Shown here: piece by piece, positions 20,352 through 44,930 of the stretch | Position numbering within the stretch: position 1 is the stretch's first letter | How the letters are laid out: the number at the start of each line of letters is the position of its first letter | Position numbers and translations under genes: made by a program | IMG/VR virus record: IMGVR_UViG_3300027844_001828 | Location: 124,001-188,000 of that record | Length of the DNA stretch: 64,000 nucleotides | Strand: one strand, 5' to 3' | Notes under the pieces: generated by a model | The model's input: only the letters and a program-made list of their open reading frames with translations | Database searches by the model: none | Told to the model about the DNA's origin: nothing

Positions 20352-22922
20352 ATGGAGAGACACAAGTATTCTTACGATGAAGTCATTGAAAAAAGCACAG
20401 AGTATTTTAATGGCGACGATTTGGCAGCATCAACATGGGCTAATAAATATGCCCTAAGAGATTCAGACGGGAATTATTATGAAAACACTCCAACTCAGAT
20501 GTTTTCACGCATGTCCGGTGAGTTTATTAGAATTGAGGATAAAATAAACGAAAAAGCCGTTATCAAAAAGCATGGAAAAAAGTTGTCAAAATACTATCGA
20601 GAAAGGACCAAGTTAACCGAAGAATACATTTACAACATGTTTGATGGATTCAAGTACGTTGTTCCTCAAGGGTCTATCATGTCCATGCTTGGTAATGAAT
20701 TTCAAATTGGATCATTGTCAAATTGCATCGTTATTGAAGAGTTGTTTGATAGCTATGGTGGCATTTGTTACGCAGATCAACAGTTAGTTCAATTGATGAA
20801 GAGACGTTGCGGTGTTGGTCTTGATATTAGTCCATTAAGACCAGAAGGGGAAAACGTTAATAACGCTGCTAAGACATCCACTGGTGCGATATCTTTTATG
20901 GAACGATTCAGTGAAACTACGAGAGAGGTGGCACAATCGGGTCGAAGGGGAGCACTTATGTTGTCGATGGATGGACGCCATCCAAACGTTGATAGTTTCG
21001 CGACGATCAAGAATGATGACACAAAGGTCACTGGCGCGAATATCTCAATTAAGTTGATGGACGATTTTATGAGAGCGGTAGAAAATGATGGTGAATACAA
21101 GTTGCAATGGCCAGTCGAGTCTTCAGATCCAACAGTCACAAGAACTGTAAAGGCTAAAGAACTTTGGGAGACGATTATTAGTTCCGCGCATCTTCGTGCA
21201 GAGCCGGGGTTGATCTTCTGGGATCGCCAGCATTTCTATTCCACTTCATCCTTGTATCCGCAATACAAAAACATTTCTACTAATCCATGCGCTGAAATCG
21301 CAATGGGTAATGACTCTTGTAGATTAATGGCGCTCGTACTTTTTGGATTCATTGACAATCCATTTACGAATAGAGCCAGGTTCAACTACGATAAGTTTTA
21401 TGAATACGTCTATGAATCACAAAGGTTGATGGACGACGTTGTTGAATTGGAGCTTGAACATGTAAAAAGGATCATTGAAAAGATCAAGTCAGATCCTGAG
21501 CCGGATCATATTAAGCAAGTAGAGATCGCGACTTGGGAAAGGCTTTATGAGTCAGGTAAAAACGGAAGACGCACTGGATTAGGGTTCACTGCACTTGCTG
21601 ACACGCTTGCTGCGTTGGGTATCAAGTTCGATTCGAAAAAGGCCCTCAAGGTTACTGATGAGATCATGAGGGTTAAGTTGAAAGCCGAGTGGGATTCATC
21701 AATTGATATGGCGATTGAAAGAGGTCAATTTGTTGGGTTCGATAAAGAGATTGAAGATCAGTCAGAATTCATCCACATGGTTAAAAAAGAGTTCCCTGAG
21801 ATTTATGCACGTAATATGGAATATGGAAGGCGTAATATTTCAATCAGCACATTAGCTCCCTGTGGAAGCGTGTCAATCGAAGCGCAAACTTCGTCTGGTG
21901 GGGAAGCCCTCTTCGCATTGAAGTTCGGTCGTAGAAGAAAGGTCAACCCAAATGATGAAGAGGTCAGAGTTGACTTTGTGGATGAACAGGGCGATAGCTG
22001 GATGTATTTTGAAGTTGAGCATGAAAGATTAAAGCAATGGTCTGAAGTCACCGGGAATAAGAATTATGATGAGTCACCATATTTTGGATGTACCGCTCAT
22101 GATATTGATTGGAACTACAGGGTTAAACTCCAGGGTGTGATTCAGAAGTACACAACACATTCTGTTTCATCAACAATCAACTTGCCTAATGATGTTTCAT
22201 TGGAAGAGGTGTCAGATATTTATATGGCCTCATGGAAAGAGGGATTGAAAGGAATCACTATATATAGAGATGGTTGCCGTAGTGGAGTGTTGATTTTGAG
22301 CGAGACAGACGACGATGGTAGACCTGTTAACATTGTTTCCTCTCAAGCGCCAAAGAGGCCGGAATTCTTACCATGTGATATCCATGTCACAAACATCAAA
22401 GGGGTCAAGTGGGTGTTCCTTATCGGAATGTTAAATGAAAGACCCTATGAAGTGTTTGGCGGCAAATTTGATGACATCATCATTCCTGCCAAATATATAG
22501 GGGGAAGGACTGATCCTAATGTTAAATGGAAAGCAACTGACTTGACAGCAGCTATTTTTAAAAATGATGGTCATTACGATCTTAATCTTTCAGACCCGAA
22601 AAAAGTAGTTAACGATCATTCTGAATCAACTTTGATAGAAGACATCGCGTCCCATTTCAGTGTTGATTTGGGAACTCCGACAAGATTGATTTCAATGCTC
22701 TTACGTCATGGCGTTTCAATAAATAACATTTGTGAGCAGATCAAAAAGATTCCGCAGGAAGACACAATGTTGACCTTTGAAAAAGGTGTTGGCAGAGTGT
22801 TGAAGAAGTACATCGACGATAATACAAAGGCCAAGGGGACATGTCCTGAGTGCGAACGCCATTTGATTTATGAAGGCGGTTGTGTGAAGTGTTCAAGTTG
22901 TCATTGGTCAAAATGCGAGTAG
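20352..22922 (+). CDS. nrdJ: adenosylcobalamin-dependent (class II) ribonucleotide reductase
   Basis: SLSNC, RRCGVG, GRRGALM, STNPCAE, DSCRL, GRRTGLG, TLAPCGS, SSTINLP, KGITIYRDG; C-terminal zinc ribbon CPEC...CSSC. Confidence 0.93.
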   Translation: MERHKYSYDEVIEKSTEYFNGDDLAASTWANKYALRDSDGNYYENTPTQMFSRMSGEFIRIEDKINEKAVIKKHGKKLSKYYRERTKLTEEYIYNMFDGFKYVVPQGSIMSMLGNEFQIGSLSNCIVIEELFDSYGGICYADQQLVQLMKRRCGVGLDISPLRPEGENVNNAAKTSTGAISFMERFSETTREVAQSGRRGALMLSMDGRHPNVDSFATIKNDDTKVTGANISIKLMDDFMRAVENDGEYKLQWPVESSDPTVTRTVKAKELWETIISSAHLRAEPGLIFWDRQHFYSTSSLYPQYKNISTNPCAEIAMGNDSCRLMALVLFGFIDNPFTNRARFNYDKFYEYVYESQRLMDDVVELELEHVKRIIEKIKSDPEPDHIKQVEIATWERLYESGKNGRRTGLGFTALADTLAALGIKFDSKKALKVTDEIMRVKLKAEWDSSIDMAIERGQFVGFDKEIEDQSEFIHMVKKEFPEIYARNMEYGRRNISISTLAPCGSVSIEAQTSSGGEALFALKFGRRRKVNPNDEEVRVDFVDEQGDSWMYFEVEHERLKQWSEVTGNKNYDESPYFGCTAHDIDWNYRVKLQGVIQKYTTHSVSSTINLPNDVSLEEVSDIYMASWKEGLKGITIYRDGCRSGVLILSETDDDGRPVNIVSSQAPKRPEFLPCDIHVTNIKGVKWVFLIGMLNERPYEVFGGKFDDIIIPAKYIGGRTDPNVKWKATDLTAAIFKNDGHYDLNLSDPKKVVNDHSESTLIEDIASHFSVDLGTPTRLISMLLRHGVSINNICEQIKKIPQEDTMLTFEKGVGRVLKKYIDDNTKAKGTCPECERHLIYEGGCVKCSSCHWSKCE

Positions 22923-35291: not shown

Positions 35292-37226
35292 ATGACAATA
35301 CGTGGATACCACAAGATCGCTATTGCTGTACCCAAGCTCACCCTTGCAGATCCAGCCGCAAACGCTGAAGAAATTTGTAAGCAGATATCCTCTGTGCAAA
35401 ACACAGGTGTTTCAGTGATGCTTTTCCCGGAACTCTGTGTGACTGGATACTCATGTGGAGACCTCTTCCAGAGTAGAGCCTTGATAGAGGCCGGGTATGC
35501 TGCTTTAGGTAAAATCGCTGAAATGACAAAATGGGTTGACGGTTTACAAAGCGTCCCCACGGTGATTGTCGGCGCTCCCATTATAGCGTATGGAAAGTTG
35601 TATAACTGTGCTATAGTAATCTCTGATGGCAAAGTTTCTGGAATAGTACCAAAGAGTTACCTCCCCAACTACAAAGAGTTTTATGAGAAGAGATGGTTTG
35701 CTTCTGGAAAGGGGGTCAAAAACGACTCTTTGTCAGGGATTAATGATAGTCAAATAAGTTTCGGCACCGATTTGATTTTTAATTGCCGCAATGACGATCC
35801 ATTCCCCTTTGCTGTTGAAGTGTGCGAAGACTTGTGGGCTGTAAACCCTCCCAGCAATGATTACGCACTTGCCGGTGCCGAAGCTATTTTTAACTTGTCA
35901 GCGAGTAATGAACTTGTTGGTAAAGCATCTTTTAGAAAAGATCTTGTGGTTGCACATAGCGCCAAATTAATGTCTGCATATTTTTATGCCTCATCTGGAA
36001 TTTACGAGTCTGTTTCAGACGTGGTATTCGGTGGACATATGATGGCCGCAGTAAACGGGCACTTGATTAAAGAGAACGATAGGTTCAATCGTGAATCAGA
36101 AGTGATGACTGTTGCCGTTGATTTTGAAGCTATAGAACAACAACGTCGTTCCGAATCAATCTTTAGAGATTATGACACCATTGAAATGAGAGGTCAGGAT
36201 GTCAATCTTTACCGAACTGCCAATGCTGACTATTCAGATCTTGTCATTGATCCACATCCATTTGTCCCGTCTAATGAAAGTGTCATGAATGAGCGGTGTC
36301 AAGAGATTTTCACGATTCAATCAACAGCACTCGCCAATCGACTTCAACATGTCGGTGAAAATACGAAAGCGGTTATTGGCGTATCGGGAGGACTTGATTC
36401 AACACTTGCACTTCTTGTTGTTGAAAAAGCATTCAAACTCTTGGATAAAGATCTTGAAGATATCATTGCAGTAACAATGCCTGGACCCGGAACGTCAGAT
36501 AGAACCTTTAAAAATGCAAACGAGTTGTGTTTTGAAATGGGCATGGGATTAAAGGAAATAAGAATTAAAGAGGCTTGTGAACAACACTTAAAAGACATTG
36601 GACATGAATCGACAAGTGATGTGACATACGAAAACGTTCAAGCCCGTGAGCGCACACAAGTATTAATGGACCTTGCCAACAAACATGACGGTATCGTCAT
36701 TGGAACAGGTGATCTTTCAGAGATCGCACTTGGCTGGTGTACATATAATGGGGATCACATATCAATGTATGCTGTTAATTGCAGTGTTCCTAAGACCTTG
36801 GTGAAGCACTTGGTTTCATGGGTGGCTGATAGTGGTAATGTTACCACCAGAACAGGGGAAATTTTGCATGATATTGTTGATACGCCAATCTCTCCAGAAT
36901 TACTTGCGCCAAAAGATGGTGAGATCTCTCAAAAGACAGAAGATATCATCGGACCATATGAGCTTCATGATTTTTTCCTTTACTATACAATAAAGTTTGG
37001 GTTTACACCTGATAAGATTATCACTCTTGCCAAACTCGCATTCACAGAATATGAAGAGGCGGAGATTAAAACTTGTATGGAGACTTTTATCAAGAGATTT
37101 TTTGGGAATCAATTCAAACGCAATTGCATACCTGACGGGCCAAAGGTCGGTAGTATCTCATTGTCGCCTCGTGGAGACTGGAGAATGCCAGTTGAGGCCA
37201 GTTCAGCGGCCTGGATGAAAAGTTGA
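35292..37226 (+). CDS. nadE: glutamine-dependent NAD+ synthetase
   Basis: Nitrilase triad FPELC / PKSYLPNYKEFYE / VCEDLW; synthetase GVSGGLDST, ENVQARERT, GDLSEIALGW, FKRNCIPDGPKVG; promoter TTGACA-N16-TATGTT at 35225-35252. Confidence 0.96.
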   Translation: MTIRGYHKIAIAVPKLTLADPAANAEEICKQISSVQNTGVSVMLFPELCVTGYSCGDLFQSRALIEAGYAALGKIAEMTKWVDGLQSVPTVIVGAPIIAYGKLYNCAIVISDGKVSGIVPKSYLPNYKEFYEKRWFASGKGVKNDSLSGINDSQISFGTDLIFNCRNDDPFPFAVEVCEDLWAVNPPSNDYALAGAEAIFNLSASNELVGKASFRKDLVVAHSAKLMSAYFYASSGIYESVSDVVFGGHMMAAVNGHLIKENDRFNRESEVMTVAVDFEAIEQQRRSESIFRDYDTIEMRGQDVNLYRTANADYSDLVIDPHPFVPSNESVMNERCQEIFTIQSTALANRLQHVGENTKAVIGVSGGLDSTLALLVVEKAFKLLDKDLEDIIAVTMPGPGTSDRTFKNANELCFEMGMGLKEIRIKEACEQHLKDIGHESTSDVTYENVQARERTQVLMDLANKHDGIVIGTGDLSEIALGWCTYNGDHISMYAVNCSVPKTLVKHLVSWVADSGNVTTRTGEILHDIVDTPISPELLAPKDGEISQKTEDIIGPYELHDFFLYYTIKFGFTPDKIITLAKLAFTEYEEAEIKTCMETFIKRFFGNQFKRNCIPDGPKVGSISLSPRGDWRMPVEASSAAWMKS

Positions 37227-37394: not shown

Positions 37395-37949
37395 ATGAGT
37401 GAGGAATCAGCGAAAATATTGACCCTAGAGGATTATCATTATCATCTATTCAACAAGGAATTCAATCGCGAAAGTACTGGTGAGGCGATGTCATTTATTA
37501 TTACCAGGAATTTGATGAAAGAAAAGAAGCCTGAAGTTTTGAAAATGGTTATCACTTCTCCAGGCGGAGATGTCAGTTCTGCTTTTGCTCTAATTGATAC
37601 AATGAAGGGATCAAAAATACCCATATACACTTATGGATTGGGAGTCGTCGCTAGTTGTGGCGTGTTAACGTTTATTGCCGGAGAAAAAGGGCATCGATAC
37701 ATTACAAAGAACACACAGATACTTTCTCATCAATATCAATGGGGAAGCTATGACAAATATCATGAGTTAATGTCAATCGTGGGTGAATTCAAAAATATCC
37801 ACAAAAGGTTCATTCGACATTACAAGAAATGCACTGGCTTATCGAAAAAGGAGATTAAGAAGTATCTTCTTCCCGCTAAGGACGTTTGGTTGACAGCACA
37901 AGACGCTGTTGATCTCGGCATGGCAGATGAAATCGTTGATTTTTATTAA
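37395..37949 (+). CDS. clpP: ATP-dependent Clp protease proteolytic subunit
   Basis: ITSPGG, VASCG (Ser), LSHQ (His), KDVWLTAQDAVDLGMAD (Asp). Confidence 0.92.
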   Translation: MSEESAKILTLEDYHYHLFNKEFNRESTGEAMSFIITRNLMKEKKPEVLKMVITSPGGDVSSAFALIDTMKGSKIPIYTYGLGVVASCGVLTFIAGEKGHRYITKNTQILSHQYQWGSYDKYHELMSIVGEFKNIHKRFIRHYKKCTGLSKKEIKKYLLPAKDVWLTAQDAVDLGMADEIVDFY

Positions 37950-39575: not shown

Positions 39576-40613
39576 GTGAAAAGAATGATAAAATTCACAG
39601 GCATTGGCGCGTTTAGAAACGTCATTAAAGCTGTTTGCCATCGTTCCGCCTATATTGGTATGGACGATCAAGGCGAGCCTATTTATGACGGGACCAGACC
39701 AAAGCCAACGATCACATTCAATGGTGCTGTTAAGCTTCATGGAACTAACGCTGGTGTTTCTTATGAGCATGCGACCGGAGAATTTTGGGCGCAATCAAGG
39801 AAAAATACCATCACTCCAGAGAAAGACAATGCGGGCTTTTCCTTCTTTGTCGAATCTCACAAGGATGTCTTTCTTGAAATGTTCAAGAGCCTCCCATGTG
39901 ACGGAATAACAACCATTTATGGAGAGTGGTGCGGCAAGGGTGTTCAAAGCACGGTTGCCATTACTGAACTTGATAAATTCTTCGTGATCATTGGTGTTAA
40001 AGAGAGTCCTCTTGAGCCAAGCGAAGATGAAGTTGCGATCTGGCTCCCTGATGATAAAACACAGCCGTTGTCTTCAAATGATGATAGGGTCTTCAACATT
40101 CTTGACTTTCCTACGTTCTCAATTGATATAGATTTCAAGAACCCTGAACTCTCAACGAACAGGATGGTTGAAATCACAGCAGCTGTCGAGGCAGAGTGTC
40201 CAGTTGCTAAGCAGCTTGGTGTTTCTGGAATTGGAGAAGGTGTTGTTTGGAAGTCTGACGTTAATGGAGAGAGATATATCTTCAAGGTTAAAGGCGACGA
40301 ACACGCTGGCAAGTCCAAGGTCAAGACGCTTAAGCCTGTTGACAATGAAAGGCTTCAAAGGATTAACGACATTGCTGAGCAAGTAACTCCAGTGTGGAGA
40401 CTCGAACAGGCTATTCAAGAGACCTTTGACACCAATAATGGTGGCGATATCGACAGAAAAGGTCTTGGAGATTTCCTCAGATGGGTTGTCAAAGACGTGC
40501 TCAAAGAAGAGATCGATGTTATTAGCGATGCTGGTTTCGAACCAAAAGACGTTAATAAGAAGATTTCTGAAGTTTGTAGAACTTGGTTCTTCGAAAGGGA
40601 AAGCCAGGTTTAA
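39576..40613 (+). CDS. RNA ligase, Rnl2 family
   Basis: Motif I VKLHGTN, IYGEWCG, IGEGVVW, FKVKG; GTG start. Confidence 0.88.
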   Translation: MKRMIKFTGIGAFRNVIKAVCHRSAYIGMDDQGEPIYDGTRPKPTITFNGAVKLHGTNAGVSYEHATGEFWAQSRKNTITPEKDNAGFSFFVESHKDVFLEMFKSLPCDGITTIYGEWCGKGVQSTVAITELDKFFVIIGVKESPLEPSEDEVAIWLPDDKTQPLSSNDDRVFNILDFPTFSIDIDFKNPELSTNRMVEITAAVEAECPVAKQLGVSGIGEGVVWKSDVNGERYIFKVKGDEHAGKSKVKTLKPVDNERLQRINDIAEQVTPVWRLEQAIQETFDTNNGGDIDRKGLGDFLRWVVKDVLKEEIDVISDAGFEPKDVNKKISEVCRTWFFERESQV

Positions 40614-41538: not shown

Positions 41539-41808
41539 TTGAGCCTGTTCAACAGGTGTGGGATATACTTACAGAGTCTGAGAAGTGATGGTTATGAGTG
41601 TGACATTATGGTTGTCAACTCATACTCTCCTAAACATTTGGTGATTGACAATTACAGAGTCCTTCATACTGTTGTACGAGTAGTAGTTGATGGTCAATAC
41701 CGTTACATTGACCCCGCAAATTTCAAGTGGTCGGAAAACTTAAATGAATCCGCCGCATTTGTCAGAGTCGTTTCCGAAGAAGACCTATTAAGAAAAAATT
41801 TTCAATAA
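41539..41808 (+). CDS. hypothetical protein, start uncertain (possibly frameshifted)
   Basis: ORF track, TTG start; a lipoprotein-like LTCGC segment lies in another frame just upstream. Confidence 0.4.
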   Translation: MSLFNRCGIYLQSLRSDGYECDIMVVNSYSPKHLVIDNYRVLHTVVRVVVDGQYRYIDPANFKWSENLNESAAFVRVVSEEDLLRKNFQ

Positions 41809-41813
41809 TTTTA

Positions 41814-41977
41814 AACAAGGCCGGTTGGCTTAGAAGCAGCCATCCCTTAATGAGTGACAAGTGAGATGTTAAGGCTGACTAAGACGTATTCGTGAAAGGC
41901 CGATGCTCACGTTGGAGAAAGTTGATTGCGCAGTCAACCAGTATCTTGAAGTCTTTGGCGTAACAGCACACCTTGTT
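41814..41977 (+). ncRNA. candidate structured RNA mimicking 23S rRNA H43-H44 (uL11/thiostrepton-binding GTPase-associated centre) with a 102-nt insert
   Basis: GGTTGGCTTAGAAGCAGCCATC (41823-41844) and GCGTAACAGCACA (41958-41970) match 23S 1058-1079 and 1091-1103; closed by perfect 7-bp helix AACAAGG/CCTTGTT; intergenic. Confidence 0.75.
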
Positions 41978-42003
41978 CCTTTTAATCTTAACAGAGAAGA
42001 GCG

Positions 42004-42306
42004 ATGAATAACGAATATAAGAAAAAAGATTTTGAACACATGGCCAACAAACGGCGCAATGCCTTGAGTGTTATTGCAGACAAACTCGGCAAAGAACATA
42101 CCATTACCAAAATGATGGGTGGTATGGCTTGGGGGCGAAATAATCCAGAGCCACATCCTGGATATGGGGCAAAGGACGCCATAAGAGGAATGGGGTATCT
42201 TGATGGTTCATTTCATATCTTGAATATTTGGGCGCGTGACAATGATCGCACGGCACAAAAAATCATGCTCGCTATTTACCCTATGAAATGGGAGTCTGCG
42301 AAATGA
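42004..42306 (+). CDS. hypothetical protein
   Basis: ORF track; chain of ATGA-overlapping genes. Confidence 0.65.
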   Translation: MNNEYKKKDFEHMANKRRNALSVIADKLGKEHTITKMMGGMAWGRNNPEPHPGYGAKDAIRGMGYLDGSFHILNIWARDNDRTAQKIMLAIYPMKWESAK

Positions 42307-43989: not shown

Positions 43990-44930
43990 ATGTTGGAAGT
44001 GGTTAACGCCGCATCTAACAGAAAGTAAAAACTGAATATTTAATTTAAGGGCAGTATGATGTCCTCCTGTTCCCTTCGGGTAACAGGTTAAGATAAGCCA
44101 TGGAAACATGGTGAAATGGGGGACCCGCTACGGGCCTCGCCAAACTCTTCGGAGAGTGGTCAGTTATGCAAACCAAGCTTCTGTGAATTTCCCTCTTGGG
44201 GAGTTATACTTGAAGGTGGAGATTAAATGAATGTGGTGGCCAACGGTGGCTATGTTCTACTAACGTTAGCGACGAGAACTTATCTTATGCCAAACATCGA
44301 AAGTTAAGAAGCAAAGGGTAGTTGTGTTGTCTGAGTTTGCAGACAAAGGCTTCACAGCAGATTGTTGGGTAACAGGAAACCATTTAACAATGGGGGACCT
44401 GAAGTCCTGTAAATCCGTCTGGTAGCCCGCAAGGCCAAAGATATGAGGTGTGTGGCATTCTACTTCTCAAAAGGAAGCGGAACCATCGAGAGCGCACATC
44501 TTGGTAGATTTATCTGTAGCTCAATAGCAGAGCTATTCCCTCATACGGAATCGGTTTTGGTGCAACTCCAAACGGATATTTTTTAACGAAAATAAAAAAA
44601 CGCAAAGACGCTCTCGGTAGTAGGTGAAAATGGCCTAATTCCAAATCCTTCGGGTAATTTGGAGACGTGAAGCTCGCAAGGCAGATCGTTTTAGGACAAG
44701 TTAAAATTTAGTGGATTAGCGTTCACGAACTGTTCATAAGGCAGGAATGGAAACGAGTTCTGATTAGCTTACTATGACGGCGCAGTCGCAGGCGCTTAAT
44801 AAAATTGCGGTCATGATCGATGTCTGGTGTCCAGCTTGCTGGCCCAGAAGGAAATTAGGGCAAGGCACGTCGCAAGCGTACTGTAATCCTGAAGAGTCGA
44901 TTATTGAAGGTGTATTTCTCAACCTTTTAA
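43990..44930 (+). ncRNA. large structured ncRNA, GOLLD-like (~940 nt)
   Basis: Bracketed by promoter and terminator; UUCG and GNRA hairpins (CCTGTT-CCC-TTCG-GGT-AACAGG, CCATG-GAAA-CATGG, CTC-TTCG-GAG, GCCC-GCAA-GGC, ATCC-TTCG-GGT); motifs GGGTAGTTGTGTTG, GTGTGTGGCATT..CTCAAAAGG, CGCAAAGAC, TTAGTGGAT, CGCAAG as recalled for GOLLD. Confidence 0.75.
44510..44580 (+). tRNA. tRNA-Met(CAT)-like element embedded in the GOLLD-like RNA
   Basis: Acceptor TTATCTG/CGGATAT (1-72 mismatch), D arm GCTC-AATAGCA-GAGC, anticodon arm ATTCC-CTCATAC-GGAAT, T arm TTTGG-TGCAACT-CCAAA; no encoded CCA; atypical T loop. Confidence 0.7.

Follow-up and report, generated by a model that had tools for sequence, protein, structure and literature searches.

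A phage RNA family that resembles the GTPase-associated center of 23S rRNA and may act as a ribosomal stalk-base decoy

The 58-nt GTPase-associated center (GAC) in 23S rRNA (H42–H44, E. coli positions 1051–1108) folds alone and binds uL11 and thiostrepton (PMC2719339). The C-terminal domain of uL11 recognizes the 1067 stem at its minor groove, chiefly through backbone contacts, together with the U1060–A1088 pair (PMC2175356), and the bacterial toxin Tre23 ADP-ribosylates H44 at 1095–1098 (PMC8661411). RNAs outside the ribosome that copy the protein-binding sites of rRNA have been reviewed as a principle; the leaders covered are those for uL1, uL10, and others, not uL11 (PMC10931766). Such leaders (for example, the uL1 site upstream of rplK-rplA and the uL10 leader) are the 5' UTR of the operon encoding the bound protein and are loosely rRNA-like. 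To our knowledge, there is no operon leader that binds uL11. Two further phage RNAs, ROOL and GOLLD, form RNA-only cages, and we know of no indication that they are rRNA mimics. Both are structured non-coding RNAs of phages and prophages, their function is unknown, and they are often located in tRNA islands (PMC12286853). Finally, phage pseudo-ToxI, the tRNA-like domain of bacterial Y RNA, and 6S RNA are RNA mimics of cellular nucleic acid ligands that capture the partners of those ligands (PMC3475682, PMC4201824).

The element described here lies in a 64,000-nt stretch of DNA (the window), which was taken from an IMG/VR contig of 235,624 bp that represents a marine jumbo phage and has no close relative in culture. 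It is intergenic, flanked by the stop codon of ORF 41539–41808 on the 5' side and the ATG at 42004 on the 3' side, with both ORFs on the same strand. Its parts are as follows, in window coordinates, with E. coli 23S numbering for residues.

41814..41977, + strand: whole element, predicted phage GAC-mimic non-coding RNA, 164 nt; identified by covariance model R1
41814..41820, + strand: closing helix, 5' strand, H42-like; pairs with 41971–41977, 7 perfect base pairs
41821..41826, + strand: 1056–1061, 5' strand of the H43 base, U1060 at 41825; supported by 1058:1080 covariation
41827..41844, + strand: upper H43 stem and 1067 loop (1062–1079), A1067 at 41832, G1071/C1072 at 41836/41837; exact 18-mer
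41845..41855, + strand: 3' strand of the H43 base (1080–1081), junction (1082–1086), and 5' strand of H44 (1087–1090), A1088 at 41853; supported by 1082:1086 covariation
41856..41953, + strand: variable insert, 98 nt; its base helix covaries in the family
41856–41858 with 41951–41953, + strand: insert-base helix, the first and last 3 nt of the insert; pair probability 0.75 in the window copy
41954..41957, + strand: UUUG linker, family specific, joining the insert to G1091; no rRNA counterpart
41958..41970, + strand: H44 loop and 3' strand (1091–1103), A1095 at 41962; match to 23S, compensatory changes in the family
41971..41977, + strand: closing helix, 3' strand; pairs with 41814–41820

Like the 23S GAC, the phage RNA is predicted to form a three-way junction; the H43 loop, the 1082–1086 junction, and the H44 loop are near-identical in the two, and the tertiary-contact residues are common to both. 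Unlike the GAC, it is encoded outside an rRNA gene, has a lineage-specific helix in place of H42, carries a domain of 24–350 nt plus UUUG at 1090/1091 and an optional hairpin after A1077, and, at the family level, has A1101 rather than U, with A1067 kept in approximately 80%. It resembles the ribosomal-protein leaders in copying a protein-binding site of rRNA, but it stands alone among tRNAs and is almost identical to rRNA. Compared with ROOL and GOLLD, its core is much smaller, its rRNA homology is clear, and it has no Rfam match. The imitation of a cellular nucleic acid ligand is shared with pseudo-ToxI, Y RNA, and 6S RNA; the phage element differs in that the model is a functional center of the ribosome. 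An rRNA intervening sequence or self-splicing intron was considered and rejected: the sequence that carries the insert is no rRNA gene, Rfam 15 matched none of its intron families, and inserts are unrelated between lineages.

A fetched E. coli 23S sequence (L207) served as the reference for position mapping. The core is identical to E. coli 23S 1056–1103 at 38 of 48 positions, comprising 27 of 35 in 41821–41855 (1056–1090) and 11 of 13 in 41958–41970 (1091–1103), and it includes the exact 18-mer at 41827–41844 (1062–1079), for which the chance expectation in the window is 0.02 even allowing up to 3 mismatches. Judged by these sequence matches, the similarity to 23S 1056–1103 is far above chance level. 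A preliminary description of the locus had mapped it base for base onto 23S rRNA, and the fetched sequence bears this out: A1067, A1095, U1060/A1088 (41825/41853), G1071, C1072, and the pairs G1091–C1100 (41958/41967) and C1092–G1099 (41959/41966) all fall where it had placed them, position 1090/1101 is U–A (41855/41968) where E. coli has A–U, and the 7-bp closing helix between 41814–41820 and 41971–41977 is perfect. It was also right that the flanks are not ribosomal; BLAST against 5,426 E. coli genomes gave matches confined to 23S genes, with only about 30 nt of the query aligned, and the neighbors of the element are phage ORFs or tRNAs, with no rRNA sequence found in the flanks. The insert of 102 nt that it had proposed does split the match at 1090/1091, but its true make-up is 98 variable nucleotides followed by the conserved UUUG linker. 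Relative to its family, the window copy departs at two core positions, with the mismatches C1057·C1081 (C·C) and U1082·U1086 (U·U).

Two seed scans of IMG/VR viral contigs were used to find relatives, one for the exact H43 18-mer and the other, independent of the first, for an exact family-specific 3' motif (UUUG, A1101) that is absent from rRNA; both required exact matches, and all family counts are lower bounds. The 18-mer scan returned at least 118 stretches, and the 3'-motif scan at least 119. Among the 18-mer matches listed, 116 of 120 share one architecture and rRNA genes are almost absent; the shared order is a new closing helix, H43, the junction, GAGU, a variable insert, UUUG, GCGUANNAGC, ACAC, and the closing helix again. 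The four exceptions are three copies that end at a locus edge and one chance match. Covariance model R1, built from alignment A2 of 35 members, was run on candidate loci and identified 100 of 100 in one set and 88 of 89 in another; at least approximately 185 loci are confirmed by the model. It placed a single copy in the window (41815–41982, 105 bits, E = 5.5e-28) and gave the genuine E. coli GAC a score of 48 bits.

The 3' motif occurs 44 times in 185,579 species genomes, and approximately 30 of these occurrences belong to the family; nearly all of the 30 lie on MAG contigs from many phyla, and a few are in isolates. Because the motif is so rare in these genomes, the family is regarded as essentially confined to phages. 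In cultured phages, it sits in gaps that have no annotation. The carriers are Cronobacter GAP32, Pectobacterium CBB, Serratia BF, Erwinia pEa_SNUABM_12/47/50, Yersinia fHe-Yen9-04, Xanthomonas XacN1/XbC2/XaC1, Pseudomonas pf16/Milchi/Astolliot, Aeromonas 4_4572, Paenibacillus Pd_22F, and one Vibrio phage. BLAST of cultured phages with 401-nt and 20-kb window queries gave no match, and these members surfaced only with a 39-nt core query. Two copies per phage were seen in L043 (5127–5365 and 5444–5711, with one tRNA-Pro between them), L203, and L223.

Rfam 15 reported only tRNA and tmRNA, both in the window (gathering threshold, and E up to 10 on 41600–42200) and in 16 related loci (gathering threshold), where LSU rRNA, intron, ROOL, and GOLLD matches were all absent, and full-text searches of the literature turned up no account of a GAC mimic in phages. 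The preliminary description had known of no family with this architecture, and neither Rfam 15 nor the literature searches supplied one; the Rfam and BLAST searches it had proposed produced no known family, no intron or other element of which the segment could be a part, and, through the 39-nt core, homologs in cultured phages. The segment is a member of a large family of predicted phage non-coding RNAs, apparently undescribed.

Covariation in this family supports the fold. In the model-aligned set, 93.3% of pairs are formed, compared with 70.6% in shuffles, and the covariation score is 0.531, compared with 0.131 in shuffles (none of 500 shuffles scored that high, and no slid control exceeded 0.151). 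Individual pairs were tabulated by mapped position in 152 canonical members among the matches listed. The closing helix has all four Watson-Crick pair types at each position and is 76%–99% paired, compared with 38%–45% in shuffles, with agreement between RNAalifold and the structure pair counts. Watson-Crick exchanges also occur at the base of H43 and in the junction: 1058:1080 (UA 63, GC 51, AU 26, CG 8), 1057:1081 (AU 127, CG 18, GC 3), and 1082:1086 (UA 75, CG 49, AU 17). The insert-base helix of 3–4 bp covaries freely (GC/AU/UA/CG), and H44 shows rare compensatory changes at 1091:1100, 1092:1099, and 1087:1102, the last with C–G, A–U, and G·U variants. RNAalifold had instead paired the linker G with C1102, which was rejected because at least 8 lineages have A in place of the linker G with C1102 unchanged, and 1087:1102 shows swaps. 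The three-way junction of closing helix, H43 1067 hairpin, and H44 1095 hairpin is thus recovered by covariation; in thermodynamic folding of the whole window element, z is 0.06 and the minimum free energy (MFE) is no better than that of shuffled sequence.

A GAC-like fold that is kept under selection is, on this comparative evidence, almost certain, and the RNA is predicted to fold like the 58-nt uL11-binding domain (H42–H44), with the lineage-specific closing helix replacing H42. The preliminary description had read the segment as a mimic of the uL11-binding GAC domain that is enclosed by a new closing helix and split at 1090/1091 by a structured insert, and had called for a covariance model and a covariation test; the 35-member model and a score of 0.531 against 0.131 in shuffles support that reading. 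It would have abandoned the idea had homologs lost the tertiary-contact residues or the closing helix, and in the homologs the former are conserved and the latter covaries.

Residue conservation was measured with the seeds in mind: each scan fixes one motif, so each loop was measured only in members that matched the motif of the other scan. U1060 is invariant (152/152), as are A1088, G1071, A1077, A1084, A1085, G1093, and A1098 in canonical members, and C1072 is present in 151 of 152. Per position, the tertiary-contact residues (U1060–A1088, G1071, C1072, A1077, A1084/85, and G1093·A1098) are therefore kept in 151–152 of 152, and in a sample unbiased by seed motif the figure is 95%–98%. In members found via the 3' motif alone, the H43 loop has U1066 at 98%, G1071 at 98%, C1072 at 97%, A1073 at 95%, and A1077 at 96%; in the same members, G1068 is at 79%, A1070 at 84%, and position 1067 is A in 80%, G in 13%, C in 4%, and U in 3%. 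In the H44 loop of cross-sampled members, G1093 and A1098 are at 100%, A1095 at 92%, and A1096 at 75%, and position 1097 is free. These frequencies for A1067, A1095, and A1096 indicate that the exposed factor-facing adenines are under selection, less strictly than in ribosomes. The UUUG linker, in members found via the H43 18-mer alone, is U 94%, U 98%, U 92%, and G 88% (A 12%).

Position 1101 separates the family from rRNA. A1101 is found in 99% of the family, and real 23S has U1101; because real rRNAs with GAGU at 1087–1090 have U1101, A1101 is diagnostic of the phage RNAs. Genuine 23S genes on metagenome contigs (L260, L264, L268, L262, and L265) have a junction that reads CCUUUAAUGAGU-GCGUAAUAGCUCAC.

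The identity to 23S could also be read as a fragment of a host 23S gene that was captured or is in decay (a pseudogene, or an rRNA with an intervening sequence or intron), or as an assembly chimera, with no function at all. Reads of real 23S do cross-map at 41823–41856. However, the flanks are not rRNA, the new closing helix covaries in each lineage, the family invariants UUUG and A1101 are absent from rRNA, the at least approximately 185 loci are in unrelated phages and match no intron or other Rfam family, and the same DNA is present in many independent metagenome assemblies. This reading is refuted by the shared family architecture, the covariation, and the absence of an Rfam match, and we give it practically no weight. 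The comparisons instead strongly support a widespread, real class of predicted phage RNA, undescribed as far as we could find, and its identity as a GAC mimic.

Signals of expression were sought in public data. The window phage DNA recurs in many metagenomes, and in one metatranscriptome identical contigs cover the flanking genes at low depth; over 41823–41856, the same metatranscriptome yields only foreign 23S contigs, which continue into genuine rRNA. 23S contigs of other organisms, from RNA and DNA runs, map at 41823–41856 with 2–3 mismatches. A search of RNA-only runs with the element as query matched no run, and a promoter and terminator scan beside the element gave nothing above shuffles. 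Any GAC-mimic RNA would be hidden by rRNA depletion and by rRNA read filters, and 23S reads cross-map onto the locus.

The insert at 1090/1091 is the most changeable part of the family. Its length ranges from approximately 24 to approximately 350 nt (5th–95th percentile, 59–345 nt), with the shortest, approximately 24 nt, in L118, and inserts are unrelated between lineages, with modules shared within subfamilies. An apparently insert-less variant of 68 nt is present on a viral contig (L011:3712–3779; 36 bits with R1). Approximately 35 distinct members end the insert with a conserved module that includes the motif CACCCC-GUAAC-UGGUAAGG; in order, this 3'-end module (e.g., L113, L004, L008, L024, and L164) has RAAGUA, CACC, a hairpin of 3 bp whose loop is GNRA or UAAC, UAAGG, a stretch rich in pyrimidines, and UUUG. 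The window insert has merely a degenerate echo of it at 41863–41878. A search for relatives of the window insert by a lineage-specific motif, in viral and metagenome collections, found only identical copies or members with unrelated inserts. The folding energy of the window insert has z = −0.55, and the internal helices that the preliminary description drew in it are feasible but not the MFE structure (−20.5 compared with −23.0 kcal/mol; pair probability approximately 0.07). A second optional insertion, a hairpin of 20–60 nt after A1077 within the 3' strand of H43, occurs in approximately 6% of members (L121, L134, L139, L149, L150, L163, L167, L178, L182, L197, and L199). Because the insert enters H44 beside the G1071·(G1091–C1100) triple, the tertiary fold could be altered.

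Such inserts raise the alternative of a pure scaffold, in which the GAC fold is a compact, nuclease-resistant three-way junction that holds a functional insert and has no ribosomal ligand. The insert range of approximately 24 to 350 nt, the subfamilies with their own conserved modules, and the cassette-holder behavior of the closing and insert-base helices all fit. But the exposed, non-structural A1067, G1068, A1095, and A1096 are conserved at 75%–92% while helices are randomized, near-identity to rRNA is unnecessary for a mere scaffold, and the L011 and L118 members have apparently no insert or a very small one. We consider this account unlikely.

In one subfamily, the insert itself contains a second ribosomal look-alike. 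Inserts of approximately 290–350 nt carry a hairpin whose loop is AGUACGAGAGGA, or within 3 substitutions of it; AGUACGAGAGGA is identical to the sarcin-ricin loop (SRL), as checked against E. coli. At least 8 members have it (L035, L092, L095, L138, L171, L196, L275, and L276; e.g., L196:5605–6013), and its stem differs and compensates in every lineage. Chance alone would give approximately 0.4 matches over all inserts; the first pass found 5 distinct ones, and a targeted scan added more. RNAs of the SRL subfamily are thus predicted to combine GAC and SRL look-alikes. The window insert lacks the SRL motif (AGUACGAGAGGA, in which a GAGA tetraloop caps the bulged-G motif on a stem), and a blastn-short search of inserts against the E. 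coli rrn operon for further rRNA pieces gave only noise, the SRL excepted.

The genomic setting of the family is dominated by tRNAs. Among the matches listed, a tRNA lies within 50 nt of the element in 66 of 158 distinct elements and within 1 kb in 99 of 158, and in each of these 99 the nearest tRNA is co-oriented with the element. The gap between an adjacent tRNA and the end of the closing helix is mostly 0–10 nt. The window copy is not beside a tRNA; the nearest, tRNA-Met at 44510–44580, is 2.5 kb downstream and is the sole tRNA in the window, and neither ARAGORN nor Rfam found a cloverleaf at the element, which is not a tRNA or tmRNA. Phage tmRNAs and amber-suppressor tRNAs are frequent neighbors (loci L012, L020, L034, and L046; L025, L027, L034, and L064), with CUA-anticodon tRNAs in the arrays called "tRNA-Pyl" by ARAGORN. 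These tRNAs and tmRNAs hint at stop-codon recoding or translation takeover in the carrier phages.

No conserved protein partner emerged from all-against-all clustering of ORFs within 5 kb, where the largest cluster covered 10 of 158 loci, and Pfam and PHROGs searches of the neighboring ORFs returned nothing informative. No ribosomal-protein gene was seen near the element, and no defense or anti-defense gene was associated with it among the clustered neighbors. An RNA ligase gene (39576–40613) lies 1.2 kb upstream of the window element, and in Xanthomonas phage XacN1 (L253, ORF260) a gene annotated as "2'-5' RNA ligase" is immediately upstream; these may mark an RNA-repair neighborhood, not a general association across the family. 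Other genes in the window encode a NAD synthetase-like protein (35292–37226), ClpP (37395–37949), and the large subunit of ribonucleotide reductase (20352–22922).

The position of the window element, 26 nt upstream of the ATG with no terminator or strong promoter between, would suit a cis-regulatory leader for the downstream ORF 42004–42306 in the style of ribosomal-protein autoregulation. However, the downstream neighbor in the family is mostly a tRNA or an unrelated ORF, with no more than 10 of 158 loci sharing an ORF cluster, and ribosomal-protein genes are missing from the surroundings, which makes a leader very improbable. As a ribosomal-protein leader in the strict sense, the 5' UTR of the operon of the bound protein, the element was rejected, its neighbors being tRNAs or unrelated ORFs.

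We favor a model in which the element acts in trans. It would be co-transcribed with the neighboring genes, in most phages a tRNA array, and processing of the flanking tRNAs would release a discrete, stable RNA that ends at the closing helix; with gaps to the tRNAs as short as those described, 5' and 3' tRNA processing would free such an end. A discrete, stable RNA is, from the layout of the loci, probable. The RNA would then serve as a stalk-base decoy by binding host uL11 through the preserved surface of the 1067 stem and U1060–A1088, and it may also bind proteins that normally contact the 1067/1095 face, for example translational GTPases, the stringent factor, or toxins aimed at the center; ligands so bound would be drawn away from ribosomes during infection. 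Binding of uL11 is the leading expectation because the 1067 stem and the U1060–A1088 pair are both preserved, and we put it at about an even chance. That the RNA is a decoy of some GAC ligand, whichever it may be, could equally well prove right or wrong, and the overall explanation, a putative phage non-coding RNA with a GAC fold that acts in trans as a stalk-base decoy, is held with as much doubt as confidence. It is favored on three features: the preserved uL11-binding determinants, the conservation of A1067 and A1095, and the SRL module in one subfamily. Against a decoy are the variability of A1067 and the approximately 6% of members with a hairpin inside the uL11-binding 1067 stem. Further points against it are the entry of the insert into H44 beside the triple, the abundance of uL11, the distance of the window copy from any tRNA together with its two core mismatches, and an MFE that does not beat shuffled sequence.

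Among the roles suggested in the preliminary description was a narrower one, a sponge for uL11: the RNA would take up free or exchangeable uL11, ribosomes without uL11 would fail to activate RelA, (p)ppGpp would stay low during infection, and the stringent response would be blunted. RelA does depend on uL11, phage strategies against (p)ppGpp are established, and the uL11-binding determinants (the fold and U1060–A1088) are preserved. However, uL11 is about as abundant as ribosomes, so its titration needs very abundant RNA, at a ribosome-like copy number; the hairpin inside the 1067 stem of some members also fits poorly, and selection on A1067/A1095 and the SRL module of one subfamily are left unexplained. 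We regard a sponge for uL11 as improbable. That A1067 and A1095 are conserved and that one subfamily has the SRL module suggests a role for the factor-facing side of the predicted RNA as well. The SRL subfamily points less to titration of uL11 specifically than to a modular decoy or to apparent mimicry of the factor-binding site as a whole.

A modular decoy could be aimed at ribosome-directed toxins of host immunity or competitors, with the GAC core as a substrate mimic for enzymes that act on H43/H44 and inserts such as the SRL for others. Phage tRNAs are thought to counter tRNA-directed defenses, and the element is beside phage tRNAs; the SRL is targeted by nucleases or glycosidases, and its look-alike is limited to some lineages. 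An arms race would yield inserts as hypervariable and modular as these, and in this respect a decoy cassette shaped by such a race fits them somewhat better than a fixed geometry of factor binding does. There are toxins that act on H44 and on the SRL (Tre23, PMC8661411). A catalytic toxin is, however, hard to out-compete with a decoy, and the neighborhoods showed no association with defense or anti-defense genes. We know of no anti-phage system that targets the GAC. A toxin decoy in this sense is doubtful, if conceivable.

The trans-acting stalk-base decoy can be put in a more specific form, a "ribosome-in-pieces", in which a small RNA, probably bound by uL11, would reproduce the docking site of translation factors (the GAC and, in some lineages, the SRL) and capture GTPases, the stringent factor, or immune toxins. 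We offer this form tentatively. If it is true, the phages would have a new class of RNA-based host-takeover or anti-defense device in their tRNA arrays, and the insert would be an exchangeable cassette for further decoy modules.

The decoy model is directly testable because there are cultured carriers (pf16, GAP32, CBB, and XacN1) and well-developed binding assays for the 58-nt domain. If the model holds, these RNAs would provide the first known example of a virus using a decoy of an rRNA domain, and many large phages of several bacterial phyla would make an RNA copy of a highly conserved ribosomal center. A common unannotated gap in phage tRNA islands would gain a function, and host factors or immune toxins whose sites of action are the uL11 stalk base and the sarcin-ricin loop would come into view.
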